From the NCBI RefSeq assembly GCF_052425735.1, contig NC_135759.1:24366001-24430000 (forward strand): a stretch of 64,000 nt of DNA, read 5' to 3'. Of this stretch, positions 6,575 to 60,520 are shown in pieces. The position numbers and the translations under genes were made by a program. The notes under the pieces are model-generated. The model ran no database searches, was not told where the DNA came from, and worked only from the letters and a program-made list of their open reading frames with translations. Origin of the DNA: Oculina patagonica. Lineage: Eukaryota. Every line of letters begins with the position of its first letter. The stretch's first letter is position 1.

Positions 6575-7498
6575 ATGGCTGAGTCGTCTGGATCGTTCTG
6601 CAGTTCTACCAGCACTCACTATTATCCCGCCGCGCAACAATTCTCGAAGACTATCTACATCCTTGCCTGTGTTGTGATCATAATCGGATCCATTTTGTCG
6701 ACTACGGGCAACATCGTGATCCTATCTGCTTTTCGCAAGTGTCAATCTATACACCCTCCATCAAAAGCCCTCCTATGTAGTTTGGCTTTGACGGATCTTT
6801 TCGTAGGATTGGTTGTTCTTCCGTTGTTTACAACGTATTACATGATGATCATCTTGGAAATGCCCAGGTACTACTGTGTTATAGCTATCACATATGGAAG
6901 GACATCAACCTTCATTGGGGCAGTTTCTATTGGCACAATAGCTACCATTGCCATTGATCGATATCTCGCCTTTCGTCTTCGCTTGAGATACCGAGAACTC
7001 GTAACATTTAGACGAGTTGTTCGCATTCTTTTCATAGAGTGGATCCTCGCTGCATTTTGGTCGGGATCCTGGTTTTGGAATGCGCCAATCAATTTGTTTT
7101 CTGGGGCAATAGGAATGTTTATGTGTTGCCTTATAACACCTCTGTGCTATCTCACCATTTATCGTGGCATTCGTCGCCATGTTGCACAAATTCACCAACA
7201 GGCGAACTTCCGTGAGTCGACTGACTTTAATGTGGCTCAGTACAAGAAAACTGTAAATAACATGCTATGGATTTATGGTCTTCTTCTGTTGTGCTACGTG
7301 CCGTATTTGTTATCCTTGTTTGCGATAATTGTCATGGGACTGAATAATTCTACTCGATTTGCACTACATTTTAGCGCCATTGCAATTTATTTTAATTCGT
7401 CTTTAAATCCTATTTTATACTGTTGGAAGATCAAAGAACTAAAAGAAAATGTTAAGGCTGATTTACGTGCGTTTTTTAACTCTCTAACATTACATTGA
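6575..7498 (+). CDS. Class A orphan GPCR, main array subfamily, 307 aa, intact
   Basis: 7 hydrophobic segments; GN (TM1), SLALTD (TM2), DRY, CYVP (TM6), NSSLNPILY (TM7); single coding exon. Confidence 0.93.
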   Translation: MAESSGSFCSSTSTHYYPAAQQFSKTIYILACVVIIIGSILSTTGNIVILSAFRKCQSIHPPSKALLCSLALTDLFVGLVVLPLFTTYYMMIILEMPRYYCVIAITYGRTSTFIGAVSIGTIATIAIDRYLAFRLRLRYRELVTFRRVVRILFIEWILAAFWSGSWFWNAPINLFSGAIGMFMCCLITPLCYLTIYRGIRRHVAQIHQQANFRESTDFNVAQYKKTVNNMLWIYGLLLLCYVPYLLSLFAIIVMGLNNSTRFALHFSAIAIYFNSSLNPILYCWKIKELKENVKADLRAFFNSLTLH

Positions 7499-7765
7499 TG
7501 ATGGCTTCCCTTCCTACAGTGGCATGTCATTCTCATCTTGTTGTAACACAGGAACATGGACATAGTCACTATTTGCTTCAAAGTGGTACTAAGACGGAAA
7601 CACCATGTAGTTGTCCGTCGGCTTTGTTTGTACTAAAAAGACAGGGTTTCAGCATATTAAAGGAAACAAGAACAAAAAGTTCTAATCTGCTTTTTCCCTA
7701 ACATCTTTCCACACACGGCTCGCTTCGCTACAAAAGGATAATAAGTCTTAGCCAATCAGAATGTG

Positions 7766-8002
7766 TAAGTCGTGTAATAAAACTGTTATTAACCAAGCCT
7801 GCCCAATACCGTACTTAGTTGATCAGGTTTTCCCGGTTTCTAGCCAAAGGTGTTTGATTTCTCCTTATTTATTGCACCGAGTGAAGCTGTTTAAACTATT
7901 TCTTAAATATTAAGTCGTGTAAAAAAACTCTTATTAACCAAGCCTGCCCAATACCGTACTTAGCTGAGCAGGTTTTCCCGGTTTCTCGCCAACGGTGTTT
8001 GA
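7766..8002. repeat. Local direct repeat, ~92 bp x2 (7766-7858 and 7911-8002)
   Basis: taagtcgtgt...ttattaaccaagcctgcccaataccgtacttag...caggttttcccggtttct...ggtgtttga occurs twice. Confidence 0.8.
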
Positions 8003-8826
8003 AATTGAATTGTGATGAATCGAAACACACTCTCTCGTGTCCGTGCGTGTATCCGTTTCCGTGCAAGCTCGTGTTCGTGTATAAACGTGAGAAACGCACG
8101 GTAGATTGAATAGAAGCTGCTAGAAAATCGTTATCACCTGCCCTATCATTGCTCTATTAAAGAAACCTTAACGTTTTTCTTTAAAAGTGCGGACAGTAGA
8201 GAGTTTATTGTTTTTTAGATCTATGCTTCTTATTAGGCTGAAAGTAATTTTCGTTACAAGCAAGCATTTTTCGTTACAAGTTTCACAACTTACTCTTTTC
8301 CTATGCAAAGTAATTATGATAGAAAGACCAAACATGAGATCTCATGCTATGTATTCTTCCCATCGTAGAGTTTATACCTATATACATATATCTATATCTA
8401 TAACTGTCACTCTGTAAGTTAATTAGACAGATCTAACAAAGTTTTAATCCCTTGTGTTTACACAAGCAACAGATGCAACTAAAGAGACATTTTCCCATGA
8501 GTACTGAGATTTTCATTGGCGGAAGGATCAGTTTAAATTAAATTGAAAAACTATTAATTTAAAGAGTTGTCTATTAAATTAAAAAACAACAGCCGGAGCG
8601 CTTTGCCAAGAACACAAAACTGAACGAAACGGAATTCGAAGACAAAACGAAGGCTGTTCCGTCTCAAAATTTGTTACCGATCTCCCTCTCTTGAGAATAC
8701 TATTGATTACTCGAAAAGGTCAAATCTTCTCTCGAACGTAGTTCACTCATTAGCCTTTTTCGTTGGAGCAGGTGATCCTTGAAACACTGTTTATCAAGAT
8801 CTACAATAATTATACAGCCTTTAAAA

Positions 8827-11070: not shown

Positions 11071-11976
11071 CTAGTTTCCTTCTGTTTGTTTACATAACAT
11101 CTGCCTTGCTGTCTTTACAACTGCCGCTCGAAGCCCGCGAAGACGCCAGCAATACAAAAATGGATTGATGGACGAGTTACTAAACACTAAAGTGGTAGCG
11201 AATTCACATTCTGGTTGCCAGATCGTCTTAGAAATTCCATGGAAAGTCAAAATGACATATATTGGCAAATAACATATAACTAAGGTTATGTAGAACACGA
11301 AAGTGTTCATCGCACGTCTTTTCAGTCGCAAAATTACATTTCCAGCATTGGAACTTTGAACTGCCTGTTGTTGAGCGTGAATTTGCAACTGATGCCGACG
11401 AACAATAAGATAAATTCTGATGTACGAAAGTGTAGAAATTAAAAGACAAATGACAACTGCAACGCCCAAAATAAACCTATATACCCGAACACTTCCAAAG
11501 CCTAAACCTGATACAAGGAAGCATATCAACCATATGATAACTAAAATATATTTAACACGGGATTTAGTCACTAATGTAGCATATCTCATATGATAGTCAA
11601 GAGCCAGAAATCTATCTACCGTGATTGCTGTTATTGTCGAGAGAGAAACTCCACATAAAGAAGGCCCTATCATCCTCCAAACATGGTCCAAGAAACGGTC
11701 TTTCGTAAGGAGAAGAGCAATATAACTCGGTTGAATAATTATACCAACAAGAATGTCTGAGACAGCGAGACTGCAGAGCAGATTCATTGAAGTTGAGCAA
11801 ATGGAAGGAGTTCTTATTATGGCGGCCAATACCAAAGCGTTGCCCAGAATGGATATGAGCATCAGTGGAGCATTAAGAACACAGTTTGTGACGATAATAG
11901 TTTCAAGAGTAGAGATACCTTCCTTGTCTGAATGACCGTCTGTAGATCCGTTGTTGAGTTTGTTGCTATTGTTCAT
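11071..11976 (-). CDS. Class A orphan GPCR, melanocortin/adenosine-receptor-like, separate family, 301 aa
   Basis: Start at MNNSN (first ATG; the ORF-track start is a GTG). GNALV, SLAVSD, DRF, CYLP, NSSINPFLY; N-glycosylation sequons in the N-terminus. Confidence 0.92.
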   Translation of the reverse strand: MNNSNKLNNGSTDGHSDKEGISTLETIIVTNCVLNAPLMLISILGNALVLAAIIRTPSICSTSMNLLCSLAVSDILVGIIIQPSYIALLLTKDRFLDHVWRMIGPSLCGVSLSTITAITVDRFLALDYHMRYATLVTKSRVKYILVIIWLICFLVSGLGFGSVRVYRFILGVAVVICLLISTLSYIRIYLIVRRHQLQIHAQQQAVQSSNAGNVILRLKRRAMNTFVFYITLVICYLPIYVILTFHGISKTIWQPECEFATTLVFSNSSINPFLYCWRLRGLRAAVVKTARQMLCKQTEGN

Positions 11977-13980: not shown

Positions 13981-14049
13981 CCCATTCTTCAAGCATTGTT
14001 TATCATCATCTACCATTGTTTATCATCATCTACCAGGCATTCTTCGAAA

Positions 14050-14988
14050 ATGGCAGCGATATTTGATTCGTTTTGTAGTTCTAATAGCTCTCACTATTAC
14101 CCTGCCGCGCAACAATTCCCGAAGACTATCTACATCTTTGCATGTGTTTTCAACTTGATCATCTCAGTTTCATCAATTCTGGGGAACATTTTGATCTTAT
14201 TCGCTCTTCGCAAGTGTCAGTCTCTACATTCTCCATCAAAAGCTCTGTTATGTAGTTTGGCTTTGACGGATCTTTTCGTTGGACTGGTTGTTCGTCCATT
14301 GTTTATTTCTTATTACTTGATGATCATTTTGGAAATGCCCACTTATTACTGTGTTATAGCTATCACATATGCGAGGACATCAACCTTTATCGCAGCAGTT
14401 TCGCTTGAAACCATTGCCACAATTGCCGTTGATCGGTATCTCGCTTTCCATCTTCGCTTGAGATACCGAGAACTCGTGAAATTTAGACGAGTTGTTTTCG
14501 TTCTTGTTTCCGAGTGGATGTTCGCAGCAGTTTGGTCGGGAATCTGGTTTTGGAATGCATTGGTCAATATGATATTTGGGGCAATCGGTTTGTTCAGTTG
14601 TTGTCTCATAACACCTTTATGCTATATCAGTATTTACCGTGGTCTACGGCGTCATGTTGCCCAAATTCACCAACAGGTAAACTCCAGTTGGTCAACCGAC
14701 TTAAATGTGGTTCAATATAAGAAAACTGTGAATAACATGCTGTGGATTTATGGTCTTCTTCTTGTGTGCTACATTCCACACTTTACATCGCTGCTTGCAG
14801 TACTCGCCATGGGACTTAACAACTCCACTCGGTTTGCACTACATTTTGGTGTCATTACAGTTTATGTTAATTCGTCTTTAAATCCTATTCTATACTGTTG
14901 GAAAATCAATGAAATAAAGGAAAAAGTTATTGCTGATTTAAATGCACTTCGTAACTTTTTGCTAGCTTCATTAGGTTTGGCAAACTAA
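14050..14988 (+). CDS. Class A orphan GPCR, main subfamily, 312 aa, intact
   Basis: Start MAAIF by paralog alignment; DRY, CYIP, NPILY. Confidence 0.93.
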   Translation: MAAIFDSFCSSNSSHYYPAAQQFPKTIYIFACVFNLIISVSSILGNILILFALRKCQSLHSPSKALLCSLALTDLFVGLVVRPLFISYYLMIILEMPTYYCVIAITYARTSTFIAAVSLETIATIAVDRYLAFHLRLRYRELVKFRRVVFVLVSEWMFAAVWSGIWFWNALVNMIFGAIGLFSCCLITPLCYISIYRGLRRHVAQIHQQVNSSWSTDLNVVQYKKTVNNMLWIYGLLLVCYIPHFTSLLAVLAMGLNNSTRFALHFGVITVYVNSSLNPILYCWKINEIKEKVIADLNALRNFLLASLGLAN

Positions 14989-15767
14989 AACTCTAACTAT
15001 TTTTTGTTGGCATATTTCTTCCAGCAATGCTGTCATTTTATTATCAGTATCAAGAAACCGAGCTTATCACCAGTGATGAACAATACCAGTTAAGAGGAAA
15101 CACTACGATTATCGAGGCTTTTCGCCTCAAGGACACTCTGAAAACTTTTCCGAGACCGGAAACCAAGCCAGAAGAGCCTTTGGTATCCAGGATAGGGAGA
15201 TTGTTACCACGCGTAATTTATGCTGGCGCAAACAAAACTTAAAATTACTTTATACCTAATTTGCCCCCTTTACAGTATAAAAATGTCAGCTCATTGTAAT
15301 TTTACTGGCATGTAGCATTCATTGTCCTCACTAGTATGGTAGGGAGACTTTAGTCCGTTATTTGGGAGAAATCTCATTATAGTGGGGAGGAATAAATTGC
15401 GTAGGTGATGTCATGAATAAAATGCAGTAGATTTAATTAAATTGTTGGTCATGTCATGTTCTATTTTATGTCTGTCGGCAAAACCAGTTGGACTGGTTTG
15501 TCATATTCTATTTTTATCTTGGCTGGTATAACTGGTTTGACAGGCTACATTTTATTTTTGAATCACTGATGTAATAGTTGCGCAAGTAATGTGCAATAGA
15601 AGCATCAGTGCTTGTTGTTTTTAATTTTATTCGAAATTGCTTACCCATTCCGTCTGTAATATACACATTGTTTTCAAATAATGGTTTTATACTCGAAGCG
15701 CTTGAGTGAACACGGATAGAAGCGTTTAAAAACTTAGTCCAAAGCAAAAACTTTTACAAAATTTCTG

Positions 15768-16207
15768 TCTCCTCTTCCTCCTCCTCCTCCTCCACCACCA
15801 CCACCACCACTTCCACCACAATTCTATGGTTTTCCAAAACCACCACAATTCTATTGTCATCGACTGCCACCACCACCGCCACAATATCATGGTTTCCACC
15901 ATCATCACCACCACCACAATTTTATGGTCACCACCACCACCACCACCACAATTTTTATGGTTTCCACTACCACCACCACAATTTTTATGGTTTCCACCAA
16001 GACCACCACAATTCCTTTGTTTTTCACTGCCACCACCACTACCACAGTTTCATGCCTCTTCCTCCTCAGTTTTTTTTTTTACCTCTTCCTCTTCCTCTTC
16101 AACAATTCTATAATAGTGGAAGAGGGGAGGAGGGGGGAAGATTAGACTCAAAGGAGTCAAACAAAAAAAATTGAAGGAGGAGGAGGCATGGAATTGTGGT
16201 GGTGGTG
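15768..16207. repeat. Compound (CCT)n/(CCA)n micro/minisatellite with an inverted distal copy
   Basis: Units like ccaccaccacaatt(c/t)tatggttt; 16170-16207 is the inverted counterpart of ~16030-16070. Confidence 0.9.
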
Positions 16208-17086
16208 TAAGACAATAGAATTGCTTATATCGTGCATAGTATACGTATCCTCAATCCAGTGGAAATCCCTAATAGAATATGTATAAAGATGAAGCTGGAG
16301 GGTATTGCACTAATTAGAAGAATGCAGATATAAACGACACTGTTATGTCGTGTTGCTCTATTTATTGTTTAATTTCATGGATAAAATACCAATAACTTTT
16401 ACTTTAATTTTCGTATGGAAAGGCAAAGATAAGGTACCATGTGTACGTACGGTGTTAATCAATGCACTGAGCATTATTGAATTTCGTCCAGTTTATTTTC
16501 CTAAATAAAAAAATTAACTTTTTCGATGTCAGCCGCAAGTTTTTCTGTTTAGAAGCAAGTAAGGAAGTGGCGAGAGTACTCTAGTGCGCTTTTAAAGGCG
16601 AAATTATGGATAAATTAAATTCTGAGTCAATCATTAATTTTCCCTATTTTCATCCACTTTACAAACATGATAAGACAATAATATTAAAACAAAGGCGTCT
16701 AAAACAATATATATTTTTTTTATTGAAAACACGTAATAAATAAAAAACAATCATCAGAATAAAATTGACATAGCCGTCGCGACTTCCTTTAACTTATTCA
16801 AGTTTCTCTAATCAAAATGTTAATTTGCCAGCTTCTTGACATTTAAAAAGTTGAAATTGTCGATATTTGATTGACAGCACTTTAAATTTTTAGTTTTGAA
16901 ATAAGATTTTCCGTAAATATAAGCTCTGTTTGCTTTATAACGTTTCACACGTCATTAACCTGACACCTCAAAACGGCAACTCAGCACGTAGGCTGCCAAA
17001 TCTAGATTGCTAAATAAATACTATTCGTCATTAATTTTTGTGCTATTTTAGGTTGTTATTATCTTATTCATGGCAACAAAAGATGT

Positions 17087-17989
17087 TTAAAATTTTGTAA
17101 GGGCAATAACTTTATCTCTTAGTTCTTTGATCTTCCAACAATATAAAATAGGATTTAGAGACGAATTACAGTAAATTGCTAAGGCGCAAAACTGTAGTGC
17201 AAACCTAGTAGAATTATTGAGTCCTGTAGCAAGTATTGCAAGCAGCGAAGACACGTATGGCAAATAACACACAAGAAGAAGTCCACTGATCCATAGCGTG
17301 TTACTTACAGTTTTCTTGTATTGAACCACATTAAAGTCGACCACCGGTTCATTGAAATTCCTCTGTTGATGAATCTGTGCAACATGATGGCGAAGGCCAC
17401 GATGAATACTAGAGTAGCACAAGGGTGTTATGAGACAGCAACTAAACAATCCGACTGTCCCTGAAATCAAGCTGATTTTTAAATTCCAAAACCAGGTTCC
17501 CGACCAAATAAATGCGAGGATCCACTCAAACACGAGGATGCAAACAACTCGTCTAAGTTTGACAAGTTCTCGGTATCTCAAGCGAAGACGAAAGGCGAGA
17601 TATCGATCAATGGCAATTGTAACGATTGTCTCAAGCGAAACCGCTCCAATAAAGTTTGATGTCCTCCCATACGTGACAGCTATTACACAGTAATATCTGG
17701 GCATTTCCAAGATGATCATTAAATAATAAGTTATAAACAGGGGAAAAACTACCAGTCCAACGAAAAGATCCGTGAAAGCCAAACTACATAACAGAGCTTT
17801 TGACGGAGAATGTAAAGTTTGACACTTTCGAAGAGCGAATAAGATCATAGTGTTTCCAAGAGTTGATGACACGGAGCCGATCACGCTAACAACACAAGCA
17901 AAGATGTAAATAGTCTTCGGGAATTGTTGCGCGGCGGGATAATAATGAGTGCTGGTAGAACTGCAAAATGATTCTGATGTCCCTTCCAT
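17087..17989 (-). CDS. Class A orphan GPCR, main subfamily, 300 aa, intact
   Basis: DRY, CYLP, NPILY; near-identical to 27943-28845. Confidence 0.93.
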   Translation of the reverse strand: MEGTSESFCSSTSTHYYPAAQQFPKTIYIFACVVSVIGSVSSTLGNTMILFALRKCQTLHSPSKALLCSLAFTDLFVGLVVFPLFITYYLMIILEMPRYYCVIAVTYGRTSNFIGAVSLETIVTIAIDRYLAFRLRLRYRELVKLRRVVCILVFEWILAFIWSGTWFWNLKISLISGTVGLFSCCLITPLCYSSIHRGLRHHVAQIHQQRNFNEPVVDFNVVQYKKTVSNTLWISGLLLVCYLPYVSSLLAILATGLNNSTRFALQFCALAIYCNSSLNPILYCWKIKELRDKVIALTKF

Positions 17990-19022
17990 TTCGGAAAGAC
18001 ATATTTTTATACAGATTTCTATTGTCCCTTAACATTATGGTAATAAATATTTGGGTTTCGAATTGGCAACCAAGCCTGAAATATCGCGATGAACCGGGAT
18101 GAACCGGTTCCAGTACTTCCGTTCTTATTCACGTATTACCATAAACGCGTGGACTGGAATAAGCTGCTTAATGCAGTGTTGGACATCAATAATAGATGAA
18201 AAAACTTTTTTCCCTTCCTTAACCAAGCCGCAATATCCAGCTATCCCGGGCGTGCAAATACTACGGTGAACGGCATCGAGGGTACCAAACGGGGAAAGGT
18301 CCCTGGACGTAACAGTGGGCCATCAGAAGTGTCAAATCGGGAGGAGTAGAACTTGTGGCTCTTCGATCTCTTCAATACCAGCTGGAGAATAGGAAGGGCT
18401 TTCCCACGACTTTAAGGGTGCACTCATTGTTAATATTAATAAACGTAATCCCTAATCAGGCTAAAAGCGGCTTAAAGCAACAAAAGTCGGCGTGGTTTTC
18501 GTAATAATTTATACTATCTAAGAAAGGCAATATAGAATAACGTGACAAAAAAAATCCTAATTATGCAAATGAAATACTCTTCAAGTCGTAGAGCTTAATG
18601 TCTTCAATATCATTACGCTGTCATTCAGTAAGTTTATTAAAAACAGATTCAACAAAGCTTATGCCCTCACTATTAGCACAAGGAACATATGCAACTTAGG
18701 AGATACATTTCCCGTTAATACTAAGTCATGTCATTGGCGCAAGGAACACCTTAAATTAAATTGAACGAAGATTAATTAAACACGATATCCATTAAATTGA
18801 AAAGCAAAAAAATTGGTTAACCAATGCCAAGCCCTTACGACAAAAACACTCCAAACAGAAAGCCTCAGTGTCATTTCGTTTCAGAATCGTAGCGATCTTC
18901 TTCAACTACGCGAATGAACATTAAAGTTCGTCTCCACAAGGTAGCTGGTTTTTAGTTAGTGTTGCAGGCAATCCTTAAACGCTGTTTATCAAGTTCTGCA
19001 AGAATTACAGTGCTCTTTTAAA

Positions 19023-19952
19023 ATGGCACCGATGCACGAATCTTTTTGCGGTTCTACTAGTTCTCACTATTACCCTGCTGCGCAACAATTCCCCAAGACT
19101 ATCTACATCTTTGCCTGTGTTGTAAGCGTGGCCATCGCAGTTTTATCAACTCTGGGAAACACTTTGATCCTATTCGCTTTACGAAGGTGCCAGTCTCTAC
19201 ATCCTCCATCAAAAGCTCTGTTATGTAGTTTAGCTTTGACGGACCTTTTCGTTGGACTGGTTGTTCTTCCTCTGTTTACAGCTTACTACTTGATGATCAT
19301 TTTGGAAATTCCCACTTATTATTGTGTCATAGCTATCTCATATGGGAGGACATCAACCTTTATTGCAGCAGTTTCGCTTGAAACCATTGTCACAATTGCC
19401 ATTGATCGATGTCTCGCCTTTCATCTCCGCTTGAGATACCGAGAACTCGTGAAATTTAGACGAGTTGTTTGCATTCTTGTTTTTGAGTGGATCCTCGCAG
19501 CACTTTGGTCGGGGATCTGGTTTACGAATGTGCTGATCACTACGATTTTTGGAGCAATCGGTTTGTTCGGTTGTTGTGTCATAACACCTTTATGCTACTT
19601 CAGTATTTACCGTGGTCTACGGTGTCATGTTGCACAAATTCAACAACGAGAAAACTCCCGTGGTTCAACCAACTTTAATGTGGCTCAGTACAAGAAAACT
19701 GTCAATAACATGCTATGGATTTATGGTCTCCTTCTTGTGTGTTACATTCCACACTTTACAACGGTCCTTGTAGTTCTTGCCATGGGACTCAACGACTCTA
19801 CTCGGTTTGCACTACATTTTAGTGTCATTGCAATTTATGCTAATTCGTCTTTAAACCCTATTTTATACTGTTGGAAAATAAAAGAGATAAAGGAAAAAGT
19901 TATTGCTGATTTATATGTCCTTCGTGACTTTTTGTCAACTATTCTATGTTAA
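19023..19952 (+). CDS. Class A orphan GPCR, main subfamily, 309 aa, intact (DRC in place of DRY)
   Basis: Full 7TM ORF, CYIP, NPILY. Confidence 0.9.
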   Translation: MAPMHESFCGSTSSHYYPAAQQFPKTIYIFACVVSVAIAVLSTLGNTLILFALRRCQSLHPPSKALLCSLALTDLFVGLVVLPLFTAYYLMIILEIPTYYCVIAISYGRTSTFIAAVSLETIVTIAIDRCLAFHLRLRYRELVKFRRVVCILVFEWILAALWSGIWFTNVLITTIFGAIGLFGCCVITPLCYFSIYRGLRCHVAQIQQRENSRGSTNFNVAQYKKTVNNMLWIYGLLLVCYIPHFTTVLVVLAMGLNDSTRFALHFSVIAIYANSSLNPILYCWKIKEIKEKVIADLYVLRDFLSTILC

Positions 19953-21452
19953 ACAAACTAAAACTTAAACTATTTTTGTTTGTATCTTTCTTCCAGTTCT
20001 AATGAAGCAGTGACACAGTGAGTGACAGCTCCAATATCGAAATTTGTAATTTCTCAGTTATGTTGACAATGGAATGCTGTCATAATATTATCGGTTCTAA
20101 TAAACTGAGCTAACCAAGAGTGATGGATAGAATTAGTTAATAGACGGGAAATCCCGCAAGAAAAGCCTCTGACACTCAGGGTTGGATGCCACGCGCAATT
20201 ATACTGGCGGAAACAAAAGTCGTCCGTTCTTTGGTATGACAGAGTCCGGAGACAAACAAACAGAAAGTAGCAGGACTTAATTCAAACGGCATTTTGAATC
20301 GTATAACAATTAGAATATAACGAATGATTATTTACAGGCTAGATGTATTTATGCTAGCATTATTTAAAATAATATGCCAGCCGTTGGTGGTTGTATTCTC
20401 TGTGGCATGGGGAAATGTTTAATTTAGTTTCTGAAGGAATAAATATGTTAGCTTTATAAACAGAATAAATGATTTAGCTTCTCTTGAATCAAAGGGCTTT
20501 TTTTTCTTGTGTTTGAACTTAAATTTATATAGGAGAAAAATAAAAATAATACACGTTGAAAGTGAACTACAAGTGTGCGGCGAAAAGTTTTCGAGTTCCA
20601 AACACACTGAACATATAGAAAACTGGGAGTGGGCTAACAAAAACACGAGGAAGGAAGTTTATTCTGAGAATTTGAAAATGCTTGCGGGCAGAGATAAAAG
20701 ATACTCCAAATCTTATGATAATTTATATTAAAATTTTGTCATTTAAAAAAAATTAACAATTTTAATTAGAATTGTAATTAGACTCGGGCTTTCTTTTCTA
20801 ACTGAATCTGCTTGTATGCGCTTTCAAAACAACTCAGTTTCTCTTCCAAAACTTTCTTCTTTAAAATGAAAACTGACATATTCAGAATGCTTTAAAACTT
20901 TAAACTGAAAGAATACAATTTAAATGGCTGTCGAAGCATCCTTTAATCTATTCAAGTTGCTTCAACCAGAATTTTAATTTGTCAGCTTCTTGCAATTGAC
21001 GTTTAAAAAGTTGAGATCGTCGATATTTGACTGACAGCACATTAAATTTTCTAAGTTTTGTTATGAAAGCATGGATGTTAAACACCAAAGTATTTAAACA
21101 ACGTCATCTAAACTGAGATTGTACCCAAATCAAAGTGAATCTTCAGAATAAAATTTACATAGCTGCCGCAGCTTCCTTTAAATTATTGAAGTTTCTCCAT
21201 TCATAATTTTAATTTGTCAGCTTCTTGTCGTTTGAAACCTTGAGATTGTCGGTATTTGAGAAACAGCACATTTAATTTCCTCAGTTTTGTCGTTATAATT
21301 TCCGTAAATACATGCGCTGCTTGCTTTATTACGTTTTTAACGTCATTTACGTGACACTGCTAAAAGGCAACGCAGCACGTAGACTGCCAAATATAAATTG
21401 GTAAATTAATATTACTCTTTATTAATCGTCTTTATTTAAGCTTGTTATAAAC

Positions 21453-41342: not shown

Positions 41343-42277
41343 CTAAACGGCTGTAGCTGATAGATAGTTACGGATTGCACATAAATCAGCAAGAACTCTT
41401 TCTTTAATTTCTGCGATCTTCCAACAGTATAGAATGGGATTCAAAGAAGAATTAAAATAAACCGCAATGGCGCTAAGATGTAGTGCAAGCCGAGTAGAGT
41501 TGTTGAGTCCCATGGCGAGTATTACAAGCTGCGATGCTAAGTGTGGCAAATTGCACACAAGAAAAAGGCCGTAGATCCATAGCATGTTATTCACAGTTTT
41601 CTTGTATTGAACCACATTAAAGTCATTCGCCGGTTCACTGGAATTCCTCTGTTGATGAATCTGTGCAACATGACGGCGAAGGCCACGACGAATACTGAGA
41701 TAGCACAGAGGTATTATCACACAAACACTGAATAAAATTATTGCTCCAAAGAAACCATGTTCATTTGAGAATTCCAAAACCAGGTTCCCGACCAAACTGC
41801 TGTGACTATCCACTCAAACACGAGGATGAAAACAACTCGTCTTAGTTTCACGAGTTCTCGGTATCTCAAGCGAAGATGAAAGGCGAGATATCGATCAATG
41901 GCAATTGTAGCTATGGTCGCAAGCGAGACAGCCCCAATGAAAGAGCTTATTCTCCCAAATGTGATAGCTATAACACAGTAATGTTTGGGCATTTCCAAGA
42001 TTACCATCAGGTAGTAAGCCGTAAACAATGGAAGAACAACCAGTCCAACGAAAAGATCCGTTAAAGCCAAACTACACAACAAAGCCTTTGATGGAGGATG
42101 TAAAGATTGACATTTGCGAAGAGCGAATAGGATCATAATGTTTCCCAGAGTAGAAAAAACTGATCCGATCACGCTTACAACACAGGCAAAGATGTAGATA
42201 GTCTTGGGGAATTGTTGCGTAGCGGGGTAATAGTGGGTGCTTGTAGAACCACAAAATGATTCGGAGGACTCGGTCAT
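41343..42277 (-). pseudogene. GPCR with a +2 frameshift near 41748-41750 (pseudogene or sequence error)
   Basis: Two overlapping ORFs give a full 7TM; ATGGTTTCTttGGAGCA versus ATGGTTTCTGGAGCA in the 8827 paralog; also CNLP instead of CYLP. Confidence 0.75.
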
Positions 42278-44100: not shown

Positions 44101-44124
44101 ATTCATCAGCGCAAGGGCAAGATG

Positions 44125-44480
44125 AAGGTTTGCGCCGTCAAACAACGCTTATCTAGGACCAGTGTCACCTGATCAACGACCCAAACCCCACCCTCCCCAA
44201 AAAAAGCGACTTTAGCGTGGGCCAATACAAGAAAAATGTAGTAGTGCTGTCTGGTTGTATTCGACGTCCTTTATTATCTCAACCTGGTTTTACTTATTGC
44301 AATCGGTAGCTATACCCTGATTTTGGCGAGAAAAATAACCTCTGTTGCTATTTATCTTGAATTCTTCCCCCCCCCCCCCCCCCTGAAACAGGCTATTTAT
44401 TGTTGGAAAATGAAAGAAACAAGACAAGAACCTCTTGCCATTTATCACGGCATCTGCCGCCCCTAGCATATGCGATCTGT
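44125..44480 (+). pseudogene. Degraded 3' half of a 53425-type GPCR, inverted
   Basis: GLRRQTTLI*, FSVGQYKK, YYLNLVLLIAI, IYCWKMKETRQEPLAIYHGICRP* match the 53425-54348 protein. Confidence 0.85.
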
Positions 44481-46056: not shown

Positions 46057-46963
46057 CTACAGAGCAGGGGCACGGAGAAAGGCCATAACTTTCTCTCTCA
46101 GTTCCTTGATCTTCCAACAATATAGAATAGGATTCAAAGATGAATTAAAATAAACTGCAAGAGCGCTTAAATGTAGTGCAAACCGAGTAGAGTTATTGAG
46201 TCCCATGGCAAGCACTGCAAGCATCGATGCTAAGTAAGGAAAATAACACACAAGAAAAAGCCCATTTATCCAGAGCATGTCATTCACAGTTTTCTTGTAT
46301 TGAGCCACATTAAAGTCGACCACCGGATCATTGGAATTCCTCTGTTGATGAATTTGTGCAACATGACGGCGAAGGCCACGATGAATACTGAGATAGCACA
46401 AGGGTGTTATCACACAAACACTGAACAATACTATTACTCCAGAAGTCACGTTCAATTGCAAATTCAAAAACCAGGACCCTGACCAAACTGCTGCGATAAT
46501 CCAGACAAAAACAAGAATGAAAACGACTCGTCTAAGTTTCACGAGTTCTCGGTATCTCAAGCGAAGATGAAAGGCGAGATATCGATCAATGGCAATTGTA
46601 GCTATCGTACCAAGTGAAGCTGCCCCAATAAAGGTAGATGTCCTCCCAAATGTGATAGCTATAACACAGTAATGCCTGGGCATTTCCAAGATGACCAACA
46701 GGTAATAAGTTGTAAACAATGGAAGAACAACCAATCCAACGAAAAGATCCGTCAAAGCCAAACTACATAACAAAGCCTTTGATGGAGGATGTAGAGACTG
46801 ACACTTGCGAAGGGCGAATAGTATCATTGCGTTTCCCAACAGTTGATGAAACCGATCCGATCACGCTAACAACACAGGAAAGATGTAGATAGTCTTGGGG
46901 AATTGTTGGTAGCGGGGGAATAGTGGGGGGGGGGAGAACCCCAAAACCGGATGTCTCGGTCAT
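46057..46963 (-). pseudogene. GPCR with frameshifts limited to the 5' ~120 bp and a shortened C-terminus (possibly intact, error-affected)
   Basis: A 260-aa ORF covers the end of TM1 through TM7; the 5' end has a G-run (46924-46934) where paralogs have ordinary sequence. Confidence 0.65.
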
Positions 46964-47417
46964 TTCGCGGATATCGGCGATACCGATTGCTGTATTTCCT
47001 TTAGATTCTGGTACTGAATCTATTTTTAAGGATTGCTAGCAAATCCAAAAAACGAACAAATTGGTTGATTGTTCACGATATGTTGCGACAAAGAGATGAG
47101 AAAAAGAAGGTAGTGATGATAGAATTGCTGATTGAACTATCGCTGACAAGCTTCGTCGTTTGATATTGTGAGTGTTCCCTGCGAATCATCGGAAATGTTA
47201 AACTTAACCATTCAATCGTCCCTGCACTGTTGTCTGTTGCTGCCTTTTGATATTTTCGAATTCTGTTTGACCATCGCTTCCACTAACAGATTACTTGAGA
47301 AATGTGTGAACGATAAAGGGAACCCTGCAATCGAGGATAGATAGATTCAGAAATGTAACAGACATTGGTTATATCTGTTCCGTCAGCAACAATGAATTCA
47401 CAGCAATATGCCCAAGT

Positions 47418-47965
47418 CATACTGTCTACAGTTCTTTTTTATTCACACACGCTGAAAATGCTATTGTTTGCGTTCGTGCCGTATTGACACTGGACCTGGA
47501 CAGGCGTTGCTTGATACAATACAATACAATACAACAACTTTATTTAAACACGGAAAAAGTTAAAGCAAAAGCTTGTGGGGCCGGACAAATAAAAATTAAA
47601 AAGACATAAAAAGACATATATGAGAAGATAGAAAAATTCACTATTATAATCTTTAAAAATCATAAATTTAAAACATCATCGTTCAGTCTGACAGTCTGCG
47701 TGGAAACGCCCGAGCTAATTTTTTAAGAATGTTCTTGCCTTTTACTATGTTAAAAAACGACTTAAAATTACTAGTTTTACCGTGTAGTAGTATGATGACG
47801 CAAACCTTTGTATATCCTCTAATAGCAAACCAGAGTAATAACAACACAGCTCAATATTGCTACAGTTCCCAATACCCTCTTCAGAATCTCATTCACTATC
47901 TCGCTGCAAGTCCAAATTATTGCCAAAAACCAATCCGCGATTGGCAAGAAAATTGTTTCGTTCAT
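47418..47965 (-). pseudogene. Internally deleted 53425-type GPCR remnant (start codon joined to TM4-ICL3), split by a LINE end
   Basis: Matches 53660-53905, then jumps to tgtttcgttcat (54337-54348). Confidence 0.8.
47516..47796 (-). mobile_element. LINE 3' end (CR1/L2-type tail)
   Basis: Minus strand ends aataaagttgttgtattgtattgtattgt; tgat is repeated at both junctions; absent from the paralogous remnant at ~50075. Confidence 0.7.
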
Positions 47966-48886
47966 GAGCAATAATGTCTTCCACGGAGTTTAAGCTGTCG
48001 GTACTCTTTCCAGTTGTGCGATCAATCCCGATAAACGGCCCCTGTCTGGCACAAATGTATGAAAATTAATCAGTTTTACAGATGTCAGGCATGGCCAAGA
48101 AAACAATTTTATATTAAGAGTGGCCAATGTGACGCGCATTTCACATGCAAATTGTCCTCTTTTATATCCAGGGTGAAATTAATTGCATTTTGCTGTCTAA
48201 AAGCCAGTCGTATTTTATTGATGATTAGTTTCGTCCACCTGCCTCTTAACCTAGATAGTGATAATTACCAAATTTTCATCTCTGGCTATTTGCTTTTTTC
48301 TAGATACACTGTATTAGAAGAGAAGACAGAAGCCGGTTCAACATACGTGCGTTGCATTCAACGAACAGCGGATGGCATTGCCAACTGAATCATTTCCATT
48401 CTGAAGTTAACATAGTATGCAGATTGGAAAATAGGTATATTCTGCATAAAACACGCCGTCAGCAGCAAATACTACTTTTTTTTTTTTTTTTTCCTTAATC
48501 AGTTTCACAAAACGTTTTCAAACGGTAATTGCTTCTATGAAAGAGTTTACATTGTCGACAATTGGTTAAAAACAGCATATTTTCTGTTCATTTTGCTATT
48601 AAATTGTAAGCTTACACCTACAATATATTGCAGTTTTCACTGAATAAATTTACCTGTTCACACTTTCAAAGGCTTTGTGGGTCTACCTTCAAAACGTTGA
48701 TTATCAATAGGTTTTAAATATTGGTCAGTCTAGGAAAGTAAATACAGGTATACGCACTGCTCCAATTTAATTTAGACACTAGCATCAGTTTTAATATTGA
48801 AGTCTCCAGGATCTTATTCAAGTTCAGTTTTTGTTTTTGGAGAAAACGTAATTGGAAACAGTTGCAATGCAGAAGCCTTTTCTAGC

Positions 48887-49819
48887 TTACTGAACATGAG
48901 ATGATAAAAAGTTGTACAGCGCACGCAAAAGGGCAATAACTTTCCCTCTTAGTTCTTTTATCTTCCAACAATAAATAATAGGATTTAAAGACGAATTAAA
49001 AAACATTGCAACTGCGCTAAAATGCAGTGCAAACCGAGTAGAGTCATTGAGTCCCATGGCAAGCACTGCAAGCAACGATGAAAACTGAGGCAAATAACAC
49101 ACAACAAGAAGACCATTTATCCATAGCATGTTATTCACAGTTTTCTTGTATTGAATGATATTAAAATCGACCGCTAGTTCACTGGAATTATTCTGTTGAT
49201 GAATCTGTGCAATACGATAGCGAAGGCCACGATGAATACTGAGATAGCACAAGGGTGTTATCAAACAACAACTTAGCAATCCGATTGCCCCAGAAACCAC
49301 ATTGATTTGCTGATTACTAAACCAGGTTCCTGACCGAACTGCAGCGAGGATCCACTCGAACGCGAGAATGGAAACAACTCGTCTTACTTTCACGAGTTCT
49401 CGGTATCTCAATCTAAGGTGAAAGGCGAGATATCGATCAATAGCAATTGTAGCTATGGTTTGAAGTGAAACCGATACAATAAAATCGGTTGTCCTTCCAT
49501 ATGTGATAGCTACAGCACAGTAATACCTGGGCATTTCCAAGACGATCATCAAGTAGTAAGCTGTAAACAGTGGAAGAACAACCAGTCCTACAAAAAGATC
49601 CGTTAAAGCCAAACTACATAACAGAGCTTTTGATGGAGAATGTAGAGATTGACACTTGCGAAGAGCGAATAGGATCACAGTGTTTCCAATAGTTGATGAA
49701 ACTGAGCAGAACACGCTAGCAACACATCCAAATATGTATATAGTCTTTGGGAACTGTTGCGCGGCAGGATAATAGTGAGAACTTGTAGAACTGCAAAATG
49801 ATCCGGATGTCTCAGTCAT
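48887..49819 (-). CDS. Class A orphan GPCR, main subfamily, 310 aa, intact
   Basis: DRY, CYLP, NPIIY. Confidence 0.93.
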   Translation of the reverse strand: MTETSGSFCSSTSSHYYPAAQQFPKTIYIFGCVASVFCSVSSTIGNTVILFALRKCQSLHSPSKALLCSLALTDLFVGLVVLPLFTAYYLMIVLEMPRYYCAVAITYGRTTDFIVSVSLQTIATIAIDRYLAFHLRLRYRELVKVRRVVSILAFEWILAAVRSGTWFSNQQINVVSGAIGLLSCCLITPLCYLSIHRGLRYRIAQIHQQNNSSELAVDFNIIQYKKTVNNMLWINGLLVVCYLPQFSSLLAVLAMGLNDSTRFALHFSAVAMFFNSSLNPIIYCWKIKELRGKVIALLRALYNFLSSHVQ

Positions 49820-49979
49820 TTCAAAGATATATCGATACCATTTGCTCTATTTAATATACCCTAACTTCTGGACTAAATCCGGCGAAGAACACGAACAAAT
49901 AGATAGATTCAGAAACGTAACAGACGTTTGGTTACATCTGTCCCGTCAGCAACAATGAATTCACAGCAAATAACTAAGG

Positions 49980-50246
49980 CATACCGACTAGATTTCTTTT
50001 TTATTGACCCAGGTGAAGCTGCTATTGTTTGGGTTCTTGATGGGCTGACACTGGACCTGAATAAGCGTTGCTTGATGACGCAAAACTTTGTAGATCCACT
50101 TATAGCAAAAAAGAGTAATAACAACACAGTTTAATATTGCTACAGTACCCGATACCCTCTTGAAAATCTCATTCACTATCTCGCTGCAAGTCCAAATTAT
50201 TGCTAAAAACCAATCCGCGAATTGGCAGGAAAATTGTTTCGTTTAT
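49980..50246 (-). pseudogene. Second internally deleted 53425-type GPCR remnant
   Basis: Same deletion junctions as 47418-47965. Confidence 0.8.
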
Positions 50247-50879
50247 GAGCAATAATGCCTTTCACGGAGTTGAAACTGTCGGTGATGTCCTAGTTGTGTG
50301 ATCAATCCCGATTAACGGCCTTTGCCTGACACAAATGTATGAAAATGAATCAGTTTTACAAATGTCAGCCATGGCCAAGGAAACAATTTTATAAAAGAGA
50401 GTGGCTAATGTGACACGCATTTCAAATGCAAATTGTCCTCTTTGATCTCCAAGGTGAAATTAATTGCATTTTGCTGTCTATAAGCGAGTCGTAAGGGTTT
50501 GTGAAGGGAATTAGTTTTCCTTAATAATTAGTTTCGTCCACCTGCGTCTCAGATAAGATAGTGATAATTACCAAATTTTCATCTCTGGCTATTTGCTCTT
50601 TTTGTAGATATTATAAAATAGGACTGAAGCCGGTTCAACATACGTGCGTTGCATTTACGAACAGCGGCTGGGATTTCTAGCTGAATCGTTTCCATTCTGA
50701 AGTTAACAGAGTATACATATTGGAAAATAGGTATATTCCGCATAAAACACGCAGCCAGCAATAAAAAAAACATTTTTTTAATCAATTTCACAAGACGTTT
50801 ACATACGGTGACTACTCCTTTGAAAGAGTTAACATGGTCGACGTTTGGTTGCAAACAGTATATTTTTCTACTATAAAAC

Positions 50880-51655
50880 AAAAAAACTAAAAAAATGTTG
50901 TGAACAGTGTCATTTTGTGTAGTTTACACAAACGTTTCGGGCATAGCCCTTCTTCAGTGTGAAACCGTTTTCCAATGTGTGTACGCGATCGCATGTTGGA
51001 TTTAAAAGGCCCAAGAGCGCGCGGAAACCTAAGCGCGCGCGCCCAGTTTAAATGAAATGAAAAGCATTGTTCAAGCCCTGCGGTTGCATTGAACCGAGCT
51101 TAAAAATGCTTTCCATTTCAATTTGCCTCCGTCGCGCTCCGGAACCAGAACACATTCTTAGTCCTCTAACTTGAATGTATTATAGAGTGTGGCCGGGGGA
51201 GTTGAAATGTTCCGCTACAGGGAAACCGGGTGTGTTCTTTTCAACGCTTCGTAGGTGTTCTCCGAAACGCTCGCGGAGAGAACGTCCAGTTTCCCCAATG
51301 TAAAGCCTTGAACATCGACGGTTGAGGTGCTCGTGGATGGTAGTTGAGCACTTCGGTCCGCGTACATGTACATCGGATGTGGTGTACTGGCATGTGCGGC
51401 AGGGCGGGTGTTCACACGCGAATGTTCCTGGTTCGTCTGTCACACAGCGGTCGGAGGTATGTACCAGGAGATCTCTTAGGCTGCAACTGCGTCGATATGG
51501 AACAATAGGTGATGCTGGAAATATTGCTGCAGTCGTTGGGTCACTCATCAGGATGTTAAAGTTGTTAAGCAAAATGTGCTTAATGCGTGAACTTAGCGGG
51601 TGGTAGGTGAATACGAGATGGGATCCTTTCTTCGCTCTGCCTTTGGATAAAACTT
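50880..51655 (-). mobile_element. 5'-truncated Penelope-like retroelement (GIY-YIG endonuclease region and 3' end)
   Basis: LVFTYHP...YRR..SLRDLLV..C..CRTC..LYIGETGRSLRERFGEHLR..VAEHFN..GH, continuing past a stop to IFKLGSMQPQGLN; the first (GIY) motif is deleted. Confidence 0.9.
50922..50965 (-). ncRNA. Minimal type I hammerhead ribozyme
   Basis: GTTTCACA-CTGAAGA-a-GGGC-tat-GCCC-GAAA-cGTT-TGTG(t)AAAC: full core, stem II, stem I with one bulge, palindromic AAACGTTT stem III. Confidence 0.75.
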
Positions 51656-51682
51656 TATTGGAAACAGTTGCAGTGCAGTAGC

Positions 51683-52433
51683 TTATTGAGTTCCATGGCA
51701 AGCACTGCAAGCATTGATGAAAAATGAGGCAAATAACACAAAAGAAGAGCCCCATTTGTCAACAGCATGTTATTCTTGTTATTCTTGCATTGAATGACAT
51801 TAAAGTCTACCGCTGGTTCACCGGAATTCCTCTGTTGATGAATTTGAGCAACATGACGGCGAAGGCCACGATGAATGCTGAAATAGCACAGAGATGTAAC
51901 CAAACAACAACTTAGCAATCCGATTGTCCCAGAAACTTCATTGATTTGCTGAACTGCTGCGAGGATCCACACAAACGCGAGAGTAGAAACAACTTGTCTA
52001 AGTTTCACGAGTTTTTGATATCTCAAGTGAAGATGAAATGCGAGATATCGATCAACGGAAATTGTAGCAATGGATTGAAGGGAAACCGCTACAATAAGGG
52101 CTGTTGCGTTCCATATATGATATCTATAGTACTGTTATACTTGGGCATTTCCAAGATGATCATCAAGTAGTTAGTTATGAACAAAGGAAGAACAACCAGT
52201 CCAACGATGAGATCGGTCAAAGCCAAACTACATAACAGCGCTTTTGACGAAGAATGTAGAGATTGGCACTTGCGAAGAGCGAATAGGATCATGGTGTTTC
52301 CAAAAGTTGATGAAACTGAGCAGATCACGCTTACAACACATGCAAAGATGTAGATAGTCTTCGGGAATTGTTGCGTGGCGGGATAATAGTGAGTGCTGGT
52401 AGAACTGCAATATGATCCGGATGTCTCGGTCAT
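51683..52433 (-). pseudogene. GPCR pseudogene (48887-like)
   Basis: Frameshift in TM3, ECL2 deletion, TM7 and C-terminus deleted, TM3 Cys lost. Confidence 0.9.
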
Positions 52434-53424
52434 TTCATTTGACGATATATCGATACCGATTGCTGTTTTTTCTTCAGAATCTGGTACTAAATCAGAGAAA
52501 ACGAACAGACGGATCGGTCACGAGTTGTTGTGACAAATAGATGAAGAAACGAAGGTAGTGATGATACAATATTTTTGGAAATTGGTAATTGAACACTGAC
52601 AAGCTGCGTATTGTTGGGTATTGCGGGTGTCCCCTTCGAATTCAACCATTAAGTTCAATCGTCCGTGGACTACTGTCTGTTGCTATTTTTTTAAAAAAAA
52701 TTCTTGTCTCACTTTCGCTTCCAATGTCTGACAGATGACTTAAGAGATATGTTTTCATCACATTCCTGTAAATATCCCTGAAGGTTGTAGTTGACCAGGC
52801 AAAGTAGAGTTTGCAGTCGAGGGTGGATAGATTCATTCGTTTACATTTGTCCATAAGCAACAATGACTTTAGATAAAGGAATTAATGCTCGCGCCGACAT
52901 TGGCTGTTGACTGGGAAATGACTTTGATTTTGAATGACAATAAGTGCAAAAAAGAGTGGTTAAAACTTCGTGTGGGAGACATTTTTAACAATGTGGGGTA
53001 TGCGTGAAAGCAAACTCACGGGGAGTTTAAGAGATTTAATTTCCCACTTCTGTTCACTTTGTTTGTTTCTTACAAAGAGTTCCTCAGCTCCTTTTGTTTA
53101 CTCAACACCTGGGAATAAAGAGTTTATTTGAAATATATAAAGGGATTATACTTATGACGCCGTGGACTAAATGGTAAAAGAATACGTCCTAACAAAAAAT
53201 ACGCTTATCAACGCTGCCATTAAAACCCAGCATTAATTACACGGCTGGATGTATCGCCATAAATTAAAGTTGGAGCTATACACATATAATAACGAAAAGG
53301 CAACTTCATACCATATGTACATCTCTTTAATGCGGTTTTCTGTTGTTTGAATAGTACATTTTCATAGAAATTCGTTTCTTCAGCACTATTTGTTTCTAAC
53401 TGTTTCTACATCATCCCCCTCAAA

Positions 53425-54348
53425 CTACGATCGCACATGCAAGGGGCGGCAGGTGCTATGATAAATGGCAAGCGATTCTTGTCTTATTTCTTTCAATTTC
53501 CAGCAATAAATAACCGGGTTTAGGGAAGAATTCAAGTAAATTACAACAGAGGTTACGTTTTTCGCCAAAATCAGGGCATTGCCATCGATTGCTATAAGTA
53601 AAACCAGGTTAAGATAATACGGGACGTAGCATACAAGCAGACAACAATATACCCAAACCATACTGACTACAGATCTTTTGTATTGACCGAAGCTAAAGCC
53701 GCCATTTTTGGGATTCGTGGCCGGTTGACTTTGGACCTGGATAAGCGTTGCTTGACGACGCAAACCTTTGTAGATCCTCTGATAACAAACCAGAGTAATA
53801 GCCACACAGCTCAAAATTGCTACAGTTCCCAATACCCTGTTAAGAGTCTCATTCACTATCTCGGTACAAGCCCAAATTATTGCCAAAATCCACTCCGCGA
53901 TTAGCAACAAAAGTACCCTTCGCAGTGTAACAGCTTGGCGGTATCTTAAACGGAGTCGGAAAGCAAGGTATCTATCCAAAGCAATTGCTGTTGAGGTAAA
54001 GAAAGAAACAGTTCCCATCACGGCAGCGATGATGCGAAAAGGTCTCCACAGTAGACAGTACAGTGAAGGGGCCTTTAATATCACAGCCAGATTCAGTGCC
54101 AGTTTCAGAGGAACGACTACAGCACCAACACCAAGATCGGACAGTACCAGGCTGTAAAGAAGGGCCTTAGACGGGGGATGCAGAGTTTGACATTGTTTCA
54201 GAGCAGCCAGGATCACACTATTTCCAAGTATGGCGGTCCCTAGAATAAGGATGTTTGCAACGCTTACGACGTAGTAGACTTCGTTTGGGAAATCGTGTGT
54301 TCTGTTGTATTGACCAAAATACGCTGGAGAGCAAGCTGTTTCGTTCAT
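53425..54348 (-). CDS. Class A orphan GPCR, divergent sister of the array, 307 aa, intact
   Basis: CQTLHPPSKALL, SLVLSD, DRY, CYVP, NSSLNPVIYCWK shared with the main subfamily; extracellular parts differ strongly. Confidence 0.93.
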   Translation of the reverse strand: MNETACSPAYFGQYNRTHDFPNEVYYVVSVANILILGTAILGNSVILAALKQCQTLHPPSKALLYSLVLSDLGVGAVVVPLKLALNLAVILKAPSLYCLLWRPFRIIAAVMGTVSFFTSTAIALDRYLAFRLRLRYRQAVTLRRVLLLLIAEWILAIIWACTEIVNETLNRVLGTVAILSCVAITLVCYQRIYKGLRRQATLIQVQSQPATNPKNGGFSFGQYKRSVVSMVWVYCCLLVCYVPYYLNLVLLIAIDGNALILAKNVTSVVIYLNSSLNPVIYCWKLKEIRQESLAIYHSTCRPLHVRS

Positions 54349-60517: not shown

Positions 60518-60520
60518 TTT

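Follow-up and report, generated by a model that had tools for sequence, protein, structure and literature searches.

The window analysed here is a 64,000-nucleotide stretch of the genome (529 Mb) of the stony coral Oculina patagonica (contig C2:24366001-24430000), and it carries an array of 22 loci of GPCRs (G-protein-coupled receptors) of class A within 47.8 kb (6575-54348), of which 11 are intact and 11 are broken. We consider it likely that this array is a local cluster of coral-expanded, single-coding-exon class A orphan GPCRs that turns over by duplication, gene conversion and inactivation, and whose copies are tuned to variants of one chemotype. Birth-and-death evolution of the array—block duplication together with recent inactivations—is real, and selection on its genes is mainly purifying.

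A pseudogene-rich tandem array

Loci were enumerated by tblastn with three intact copies and by aligning every broken locus pairwise, at the nucleotide level, with the closest intact copy (Table 1; loci are named by their first coordinate). Nine of the intact loci belong to one main subfamily (300–313 amino acids, mutual amino-acid identity 64–96%), one is related to it at ~40% identity (53425) and one at ~30% (11071), and the coding region is one open frame, i.e., a single coding exon, at every intact locus. The broken loci comprise six near-full-length pseudogenes and five fragments. Two subfamilies are shuffled within this one array: three of the five fragments are of the 53425 type and lie interleaved with main-subfamily genes. 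Of the features by which a chemosensory-type multigene family is operationally recognized, tandem single-exon genes, many pseudogenes and copy turnover are present. A preliminary description of this DNA had counted ~23 loci in ~54 kb, roughly half of them dead, and had seen in them an intronless, tandem, pseudogene-rich array that gains and loses copies; the dead fraction and the mode of evolution are borne out by the census, the lesions and the block duplication, while the count and the interval are corrected to those given above.

The flanks (60 kb upstream, 20 kb downstream), when scanned, contributed only two more intact copies, whose window-relative positions are −34964 and −31601; with these, the main subfamily spans ~89 kb (C2:24.331-24.420 Mb) and has 11 intact genes, nine in the window and two upstream. 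In the same GPCR scan, a GPCR-free gap of ~37 kb (C2 24,336,000-24,372,500) lies between the two upstream copies and the rest of the array. One further copy, on the unplaced contig C150 (87% identical, and 98% to the −31601 gene), is probably a haplotig of that array member. Genome-wide, 3661 first-look candidates yielded at least 129 scored loci of similar single-exon class A GPCRs, all at E ≤ 2e-42, and many contigs carry them in tandem clusters; among these scored loci, identity of at least 66% is confined to the array and the C150 copy, and the next-best locus stands at 44%. High-identity members of the main subfamily come, among the named matches, from stony corals only. No shared promoter or splice-acceptor motif was found among the deep paralogs, which have in common only an A-rich stretch right before the ATG.

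Duplication, gene conversion and gene death

Deep paralogs in the array are separated by a median synonymous divergence (dS) of 0.60 and a nonsynonymous divergence (dN) of 0.17, a ratio of 0.29, and younger pairs are present as well (17087/27943, dS 0.11; 6575/−31601, dS 0.20; 14050/19023, dS 0.30). Self-comparison of the window identified a block of ~4 kb, now in two arms (Table 1), that copied two genes jointly, and further shared blocks exist. Two of the pseudogenes, 24765 and 29955, have a stop at the same codon, 232, which encodes Trp in all 11 intact main-subfamily copies, and their nearest intact copies differ (14050 and 19023, respectively); either the stop already sat in a copy that was then duplicated, or gene conversion carried it from one copy to another. 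The dN/dS ratio (omega) between pseudogenes and intact copies, 0.15–0.44, is like that between intact pairs, which places most of the divergence before the loss of constraint and makes the inactivations recent. The lesion in 41343 could be an allele or an assembly error instead of marking a young pseudogene.

Recombination among the copies is detected by the pairwise homoplasy index (PHI) test (p=0.0005), and a breakpoint scan favours codons ~45, 150 and 210, which divide the gene into four segments. In approximately unbiased (AU) tests three of the segments each reject the trees inferred for the others, and segment 46–150 also rejects the global tree (p=0.004). The pair 6575/−31601 is a conversion mosaic, with dS of 0.065, 0.415, 0.159 and 0.083 in successive segments. 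Among deep paralogs, dS is lowest from transmembrane helix (TM) 2 through TM3 to intracellular loop (ICL) 2 and falls to 0.18 near the ICL2 motif, whereas a cross-species ortholog pair has uniform segment values (0.405, 0.402, 0.347 and 0.327). Because the ortholog values are uniform, the low paralog dS in TM2-TM3-ICL2 is attributed to homogenization by conversion, and constraint on silent sites of the ICL2 block is ruled out. The uniformity of TM2-TM3-ICL2 is in this way partly explained by gene conversion.

A class A fold with a common cytoplasmic face

The intact proteins match Pfam 7tm_1 (PF00001) at 98, 85 and 85 bits (cut-off 30.5). An AlphaFold2 (AF2) model built with 52 homologs (predicted local distance difference test, pLDDT, 84; predicted template modelling score, pTM, 0.80) has seven TM helices (25-55, 61-93, 97-134, 145-168, 170-209, 220-254 and 258-285) followed by helix 8 (H8), and Foldseek matches it to class A structures with probability 1.00. 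The best sequence and structure matches in the PDB, at 17–22% identity, are the beta1-adrenergic, 5-HT1E, TAAR13, A2A, H2 and CB2 receptors; in the ESM Atlas, the closest clusters all come from cnidarians. With Ballesteros-Weinstein numbering counted from DRY, CYxP and NPxxY, the class A microswitches are in place: N1.50, D2.50, D3.49, R3.50, W4.50, P6.50 and NPxxY are invariant in the 11 main-subfamily copies, and Y5.58 and CYxP are present in the main-subfamily proteins. Position 3.51 is Y except for C in 19023 and F in 34964, and 6.48 is Y, not W. This Tyr is unusual, as are the near-absent second extracellular loop and the Cys-bearing N-terminus treated below.

The ICL1, ICL2, TM6-base and H8 motifs are nearly invariant in the array and are conserved too in 52 sequences from many corals. 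Specifically, CQSLHxPSKALL, DRYLAFxLRLRYRELV and QYKKTVxNxLW carry one or two substitutions in a few copies, and YCWKI carries none. Judging from these residues, the proteins look like signalling-competent receptors with a common G-protein-facing surface. The near-invariance of these motifs had been noted in the preliminary description and read there as shared signalling; given the conserved cytoplasmic face, shared signalling is a fair prediction, but part of the invariance of TM2-TM3-ICL2 is owed to gene conversion.

On the extracellular side, the second extracellular loop (ECL2) consists of 1–3 residues without Cys (in the AF2 model TM4 and TM5 are separated by one non-helical residue), and a canonical Cys3.25-ECL2 disulfide is impossible because ECL2 is practically absent. 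This does not unseat class A membership, because several bona fide class A groups likewise have no such bridge. A Cys at the top of TM3 (Cys101, 3.22, three residues before 3.25) is invariant and an N-terminal Cys9 occurs in at least 90% of the 52 coral sequences, a pairing that suggests a putative Cys9-Cys101 disulfide. The N-terminal 25 residues are conserved as a whole (sliding-window omega 0.15–0.20 over columns 6–35), and this Cys-bearing N-terminus may cap the pocket.

Several identities offered by automatic names were tried and rejected. An aminergic identity (histamine H2-like, beta-2 adrenergic) is ruled out by the residue at 3.32, S or T in all copies, which leaves no Asp counter-ion, as the preliminary description had stated; Asp occurs at 3.33, in two copies only. 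In adenosine receptors Asn6.55 and Phe and Glu of ECL2 contact adenine, and an adenosine identity (A3-like, A2b-like) is ruled out by L, Q or V at 6.55, the nearly absent ECL2 and ~20% identity to A2A. Melanocortin receptors have acidic residues at 2.60, 3.25 and 3.29 and a DPxxY motif; for the names 'MSH receptor-like' and 'MC4R-like' the short ECL2 fits, but L2.60, A3.25, G/A3.29 and NPxxY do not. The vertebrate-type odorant receptor family (Pfam PF13853, 7tm_4) reaches 36 bits (cut-off 27) over residues 40-156 only, far under 7tm_1, and the 53425 copy falls under that cut-off at 24.5 bits.

Where the copies vary, and how they are selected

Variation among the copies is found at 3.33 (T/S/N/D), 3.41 (G/A/E/Q/V), 6.51 (Y/H/Q) and 7.36 (H/Q), and the stretch from the TM4 tip to the TM5 top is different in almost every copy, all as previously described apart from the additional V at 3.41. 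In the pocket, all 11 main-subfamily copies agree at L2.60, Y2.64, Y3.28, W4.60, 6.44, Y6.48, R7.32 and L7.35, and Y7.43 is shared by ten of them.

Site models (GY94/F3x4) were fitted with our own code, whose M0 likelihood of −5715.938 equals the IQ-TREE value. On a single tree, M0 gives omega 0.35 and M1a splits the sites into a constrained class (omega 0.16, 70%) and a neutral one (omega 1, 30%); in M2a a further class of omega 5.4 takes in 0.7% of sites (p=0.008), and M8 is favoured over M8a (p=0.002). With segment-specific trees the support becomes p=0.026 for M2a and p=0.016 for M8 vs M8a, and resolves to codon 170, the first residue past the TM4-TM5 turn (posterior 1.00 under M8, 0.99 under M2a), codon 210 in ICL3 (0.95 and 0.73) and codon 168, position 4.62 (0.74 and 0.07). 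The longer site list of the unpartitioned analysis, which included 3.33 at an M8 posterior of 0.82 and several lipid-facing, loop and tail sites, is lost under segment-specific trees, and 6.51, 7.36 and 3.41 have no posterior support in any site model.

The preliminary description had pointed to variation at 3.33, 6.51 and 7.36, as positions expected to line the pocket, and also at 3.41, and had read the ligands as diversified. None of the four is among the codons recovered once recombination is modelled, and the pocket is no more variable than its surroundings. Across 37 pocket positions mean omega is 0.46, against 0.47 for other outer-half TM positions (p=0.26) and 0.30 for the inner half (p=2e-4); entropy likewise does not separate pocket from other outer-half TM positions (p=0.53), nor do site rates from 96 coral sequences (0.86 vs 0.91, p=0.52; inner half 0.61). 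Diversifying selection is therefore not concentrated on ligand-contact residues, for this 37-position set, in the 11 copies or in the 96 coral sequences. The outer half of the TM bundle varies more than the inner (p ~1e-4), but such a gradient is common across GPCR families and therefore does not, alone, indicate chemoreceptors.

These results bear on two other accounts of the array. One takes it for an odorant-receptor-style sensory repertoire, whose paralogs were driven apart at pocket residues to sense many external chemicals. The tandem single-exon arrangement with ~50% pseudogenes agrees with this, as do an omega of 0.35, a small positively selected class at the pocket entrance that includes codon 170 and, weakly, codon 168, and the variation at 3.33 and 6.51; GPCR signalling has also been implicated in settlement competence of coral larvae (PMC5755313). 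We nonetheless regard it as unlikely, given a pocket without enrichment for variability or omega over the rest of the outer half, conservation of most pocket residues and of the N-terminus, the loss of significance at 3.33, 6.51, 7.36 and 3.41, the count of just 11 intact genes, and lineages that are kept across coral genera. The other takes the array for a decaying, redundant cluster that drifts under relaxed constraint and whose diversity has no specific adaptive role. As drift would have it, half of the loci are broken, omega = 1 fits 30% of sites and positive selection is weak after partitioning; but the intact copies have an omega of 0.16 at 70% of their sites, frames have stayed open over dS 0.6–1.0, and partner copies are kept in other coral assemblies, and we judge this account very improbable.

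Relatives in other corals

A tree of 98 sequences with Shimodaira-Hasegawa-like approximate likelihood-ratio test (SH-aLRT) support (at least 95 for every grouping given) places several Oculina paralogs closer to sequences from other assemblies than to each other. The pair 6575/−31601 groups with P0003 and P0004 (100), 8827 with P0012, P0014 and P0023 (98) and −34964 with P0011 (98), and the Acropora sequences form a separate clade of 34 that contains no Oculina member (98). A contig of another coral (ENA ERZ25067872) carries the −34964 ortholog followed by a single ortholog of 6575/−31601, and therefore gene order is conserved and Oculina has one extra copy. Tree and gene order point to a family that is an old array within robust corals, with local gains and losses, and that expanded independently in complex corals, not to a species-specific burst. 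The repertoire had earlier been called lineage-specific; among the named matches high identity is confined to stony corals, but the family is not specific to the species, as partners occur in another coral assembly and in Orbicella.

In another reading, the array's receptors detect endogenous signals of the coral (neuropeptides, lipids or small transmitters), and duplication produces copies specific to tissues or stages and not to new ligands. Agreeing with such a role are the conserved pocket core, N-terminus and cytoplasmic face, the partner sequences of several paralogs in other coral assemblies, a melanocortin-like colinearity that includes the tiny ECL2, and the precedent of cnidarian neuropeptide GPCRs, which expanded independently and with several receptors per peptide (PMC11087051). 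Set against it, half of the copies are dead, block duplication and loss are ongoing, and no close relatives were seen beyond stony corals (in AlphaFold DB, cluster representatives come no closer than 27–30% identity). For core hormone receptors, moreover, an omega of 0.35 would be high, with 30% of sites close to neutral. We hold an endogenous role to be a serious rival, on the less probable side.

A probably tuned cluster and what it offers

The array grows via multi-gene block duplication, partial gene conversion reshuffles segments and homogenizes the TM2-TM3-ICL2 block, and recent inactivations of copies are frequent. The pocket is mostly alike in all paralogs, with variation limited to the TM4/TM5 tip, 3.33, 3.36, 5.46, 6.51, 6.52 and 7.39. 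In the reading that we prefer, of a coral-expanded cluster with so few variable pocket residues, the copies are predicted most likely to bind variants of one ligand chemotype and to feed one pathway. An outward-facing cue (environmental or microbial) appears somewhat more likely than a core endogenous hormone because of the high pseudogene fraction, the copy turnover and an omega of ~0.35.

Several points weigh against this reading. The receptors are orphans, and an endogenous ligand would account just as well for the conservation of pocket and N-terminus. The site models were fitted to 11 sequences and their posteriors are naive empirical-Bayes values; the 37 pocket positions, although fixed beforehand, are generic class A contacts mapped by sequence and not by coordinates; the breakpoint search used a coarse 45-nt grid; and the single-lesion pseudogenes 24765 and 41343 are read from the assembly sequence alone. 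No sequencing run catalogued as RNA turned up for the stretch; four candidate runs labelled 'RNA?' yielded, over 14000-19999, short contigs in genes and intergenic DNA alike (e.g., 16351-16620, 18030-18280 and 18361-18563), a pattern like low-coverage DNA that gives no evidence either way on expression. Contigs encoding the look-alikes P0051 and P0056 are largely metagenome scaffolds, i.e., DNA, and the P0024 and P0052 coding sequences each come from one Logan contig of unspecified library type.

A bolder version, which we think doubtful, would make this ECL2-less, N-terminally capped subfamily external chemoreceptors (e.g., for settlement, prey or microbial cues) that are tuned mainly by the TM4/TM5 tip (codons 168-171) and a few pocket residues, with conversion acting as module shuffling. 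If true, segmental conversion would recombine outer-face variants on a constant signalling core.

Coral genomes hold hundreds of orphan class A GPCRs in tandem arrays, and to our knowledge no coral chemoreceptors for settlement, feeding, symbiont or microbe cues have been identified. The array is a compact candidate panel: 11 intact genes that can be cloned and screened, in which the signalling face is conserved and variable outer residues are few. It also illustrates two points about such arrays: gene conversion can be part of the source of 'invariant motifs', and the signal is overstated when positive selection is scanned for naively. Its value is practical and not conceptual, because tandem expansion of coral GPCRs has already been described as a genomic phenomenon (PMC10236652).

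Feature coordinates and neighbouring sequence

Table 1. Receptor loci and duplicated blocks of the window, in window coordinates (aa, amino acids; ORF, open reading frame; support, SH-aLRT).
Position	Strand	Feature	Evidence
6575-7498	+	Intact main-subfamily GPCR (307 aa), a recent partial duplicate; the copy it duplicates lies 38 kb upstream, beyond the window	ORF; Pfam 7tm_1 98 bits
8827-9759	+	Intact GPCR, 310 aa, main subfamily; groups with other-assembly sequences (support 98)	ORF, tblastn
11071-11976	-	Intact GPCR of another class A subfamily (~30% identity), embedded in the array	ORF; Pfam 7tm_1 84.6 bits
14050-14988	+	Intact GPCR, 312 aa, main subfamily; sister of 19023	ORF, alignment, tree
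16169-20015		Segmental duplication arm 1, ~4 kb, two genes; 88% identity to arm 2	Self-comparison
17087-17989	-	Intact GPCR, 300 aa; 96% identical to 27943 (block duplicate, dS 0.11)	Alignment, self-comparison
19023-19952	+	Intact GPCR, 309 aa; DRC replaces DRY	ORF, alignment
21476-21617	-	Fragment: final ~45 codons of a main-subfamily copy	tblastn, nucleotide alignment
22533-23554	+	Old pseudogene: many frameshifting indels at ~codons 220-244, two in-frame stops	Nucleotide alignment
24765-25703	+	Pseudogene: one premature stop, codon 232; otherwise colinear with 14050 (92% nucleotide identity)	ORF, nucleotide alignment
27060-30965		Segmental duplication arm 2	Self-comparison
27943-28845	-	Intact GPCR, 300 aa; block duplicate of 17087	Alignment, self-comparison
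29955-30879	+	Pseudogene: 1-bp deletion at codon 169 plus codon-232 stop as in 24765	Nucleotide alignment
32082-32288	+	Fragment: degraded initial ~70 codons	tblastn, nucleotide alignment
34964-35905	-	Intact GPCR, 313 aa; groups with 10 other-assembly sequences including Orbicella faveolata (support 99)	Alignment, tree
37799-38731	-	Intact GPCR, 310 aa, main subfamily	ORF, alignment
41343-42277	-	Young pseudogene: single 2-bp insertion at codon 176; omega 0.15 vs nearest copy	ORF, nucleotide alignment
44125-44477	+	Fragment, 53425-type subfamily	tblastn, nucleotide alignment
46057-46963	-	Pseudogene: four frameshifting indels within the first 45 codons, TM1 lost	Nucleotide alignment
47391-47983	-	Fragments, 53425-type subfamily	tblastn, nucleotide alignment
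48887-49819	-	Intact GPCR, 310 aa; D3.33, Q3.41, Q6.51	ORF, alignment, numbering
49963-50278	-	Fragment, 53425-type subfamily	tblastn, nucleotide alignment
51669-52433	-	Pseudogene: frameshifts, 24-bp deletion, 3' end gone past ~codon 265; overlaps an unrelated 191-aa ORF	ORF, nucleotide alignment
53425-54348	-	Intact GPCR, 307 aa, sister subfamily (~40% identity) with common ICL1, ICL2 and H8 motifs	ORF, Pfam, alignment

The 191-aa ORF (51180-51755, minus strand) that overlaps the cut 3' end of pseudogene 51669 is unrelated to GPCRs and has no Pfam match; it is possibly a mobile-element remnant that cut this receptor copy. Just downstream of the array, ORFs resembling K+ channel exons lie on the plus strand at 57190-57507 and 59435-59917 (Pfam Ion_trans_2, E 2e-8), and 55684-57265 matches 62384-64000 at 75% identity, which suggests tandem duplication of a two-pore-type K+ channel gene in this part of the window (55684-64000). 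A low-complexity, G+C-rich 179-aa ORF at 57764-58303 on the minus strand (local GC 0.45 vs 0.35–0.40 elsewhere), with no Pfam match, is probably not a gene.

Comparison with known systems

Among coral-amplified orthogroups, rhodopsin-like GPCRs are the commonest domain (34 of 192), mostly as tandem duplicates, and copy number differs between genera (Noel et al. 2023, Genome Biol 24:123; PMC10236652). The array is one instance of this phenomenon in Oculina patagonica; that study worked at the level of orthogroups and gave no anatomy of the main subfamily, pseudogene census, gene-conversion analysis or site-selection analysis. More widely, Nematostella has >1000 class A GPCRs, mostly orphan (PMC11087051). 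Mammalian odorant receptors, sea-urchin 'surreal' GPCRs and lophotrochozoan class A sets (PMC11886862) are likewise single-exon, clustered and lineage-specifically expanded, and evolve by birth and death with many pseudogenes, but the array has only 11 intact genes, its pocket is not hypervariable and its 7tm_4 match is partial.

Melanocortin receptors (MECA cluster) align with the array proteins in a single colinear alignment (query 33-294 vs MC5R 41-307), and in both ECL2 is very short and the canonical TM3-ECL2 disulfide is missing; the differences lie in the array's L2.60, A3.25, G/A3.29 and NPxxY, at ~20% identity.

The vertebrate trace amine-associated receptors (TAARs), which descend from aminergic class A receptors and form a small chemosensory family of intronless tandem genes, differ from the array, which has no Asp3.32, aminergic motif or TM3-ECL2 disulfide and nearly no ECL2, and is not orthologous (~20% identity). 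They nevertheless share with it an alpha-group class A fold (TAAR13c ranks with the top PDB matches by sequence, E 7e-14) and an organization of about a dozen single-exon genes in one cluster. TAARs have a conserved pocket core with few tuning positions, pseudogenes and moderate omega, and so too does the array. By analogy, the array would follow the logic of a small TAAR-like family, not that of a broadly diversified odorant repertoire.

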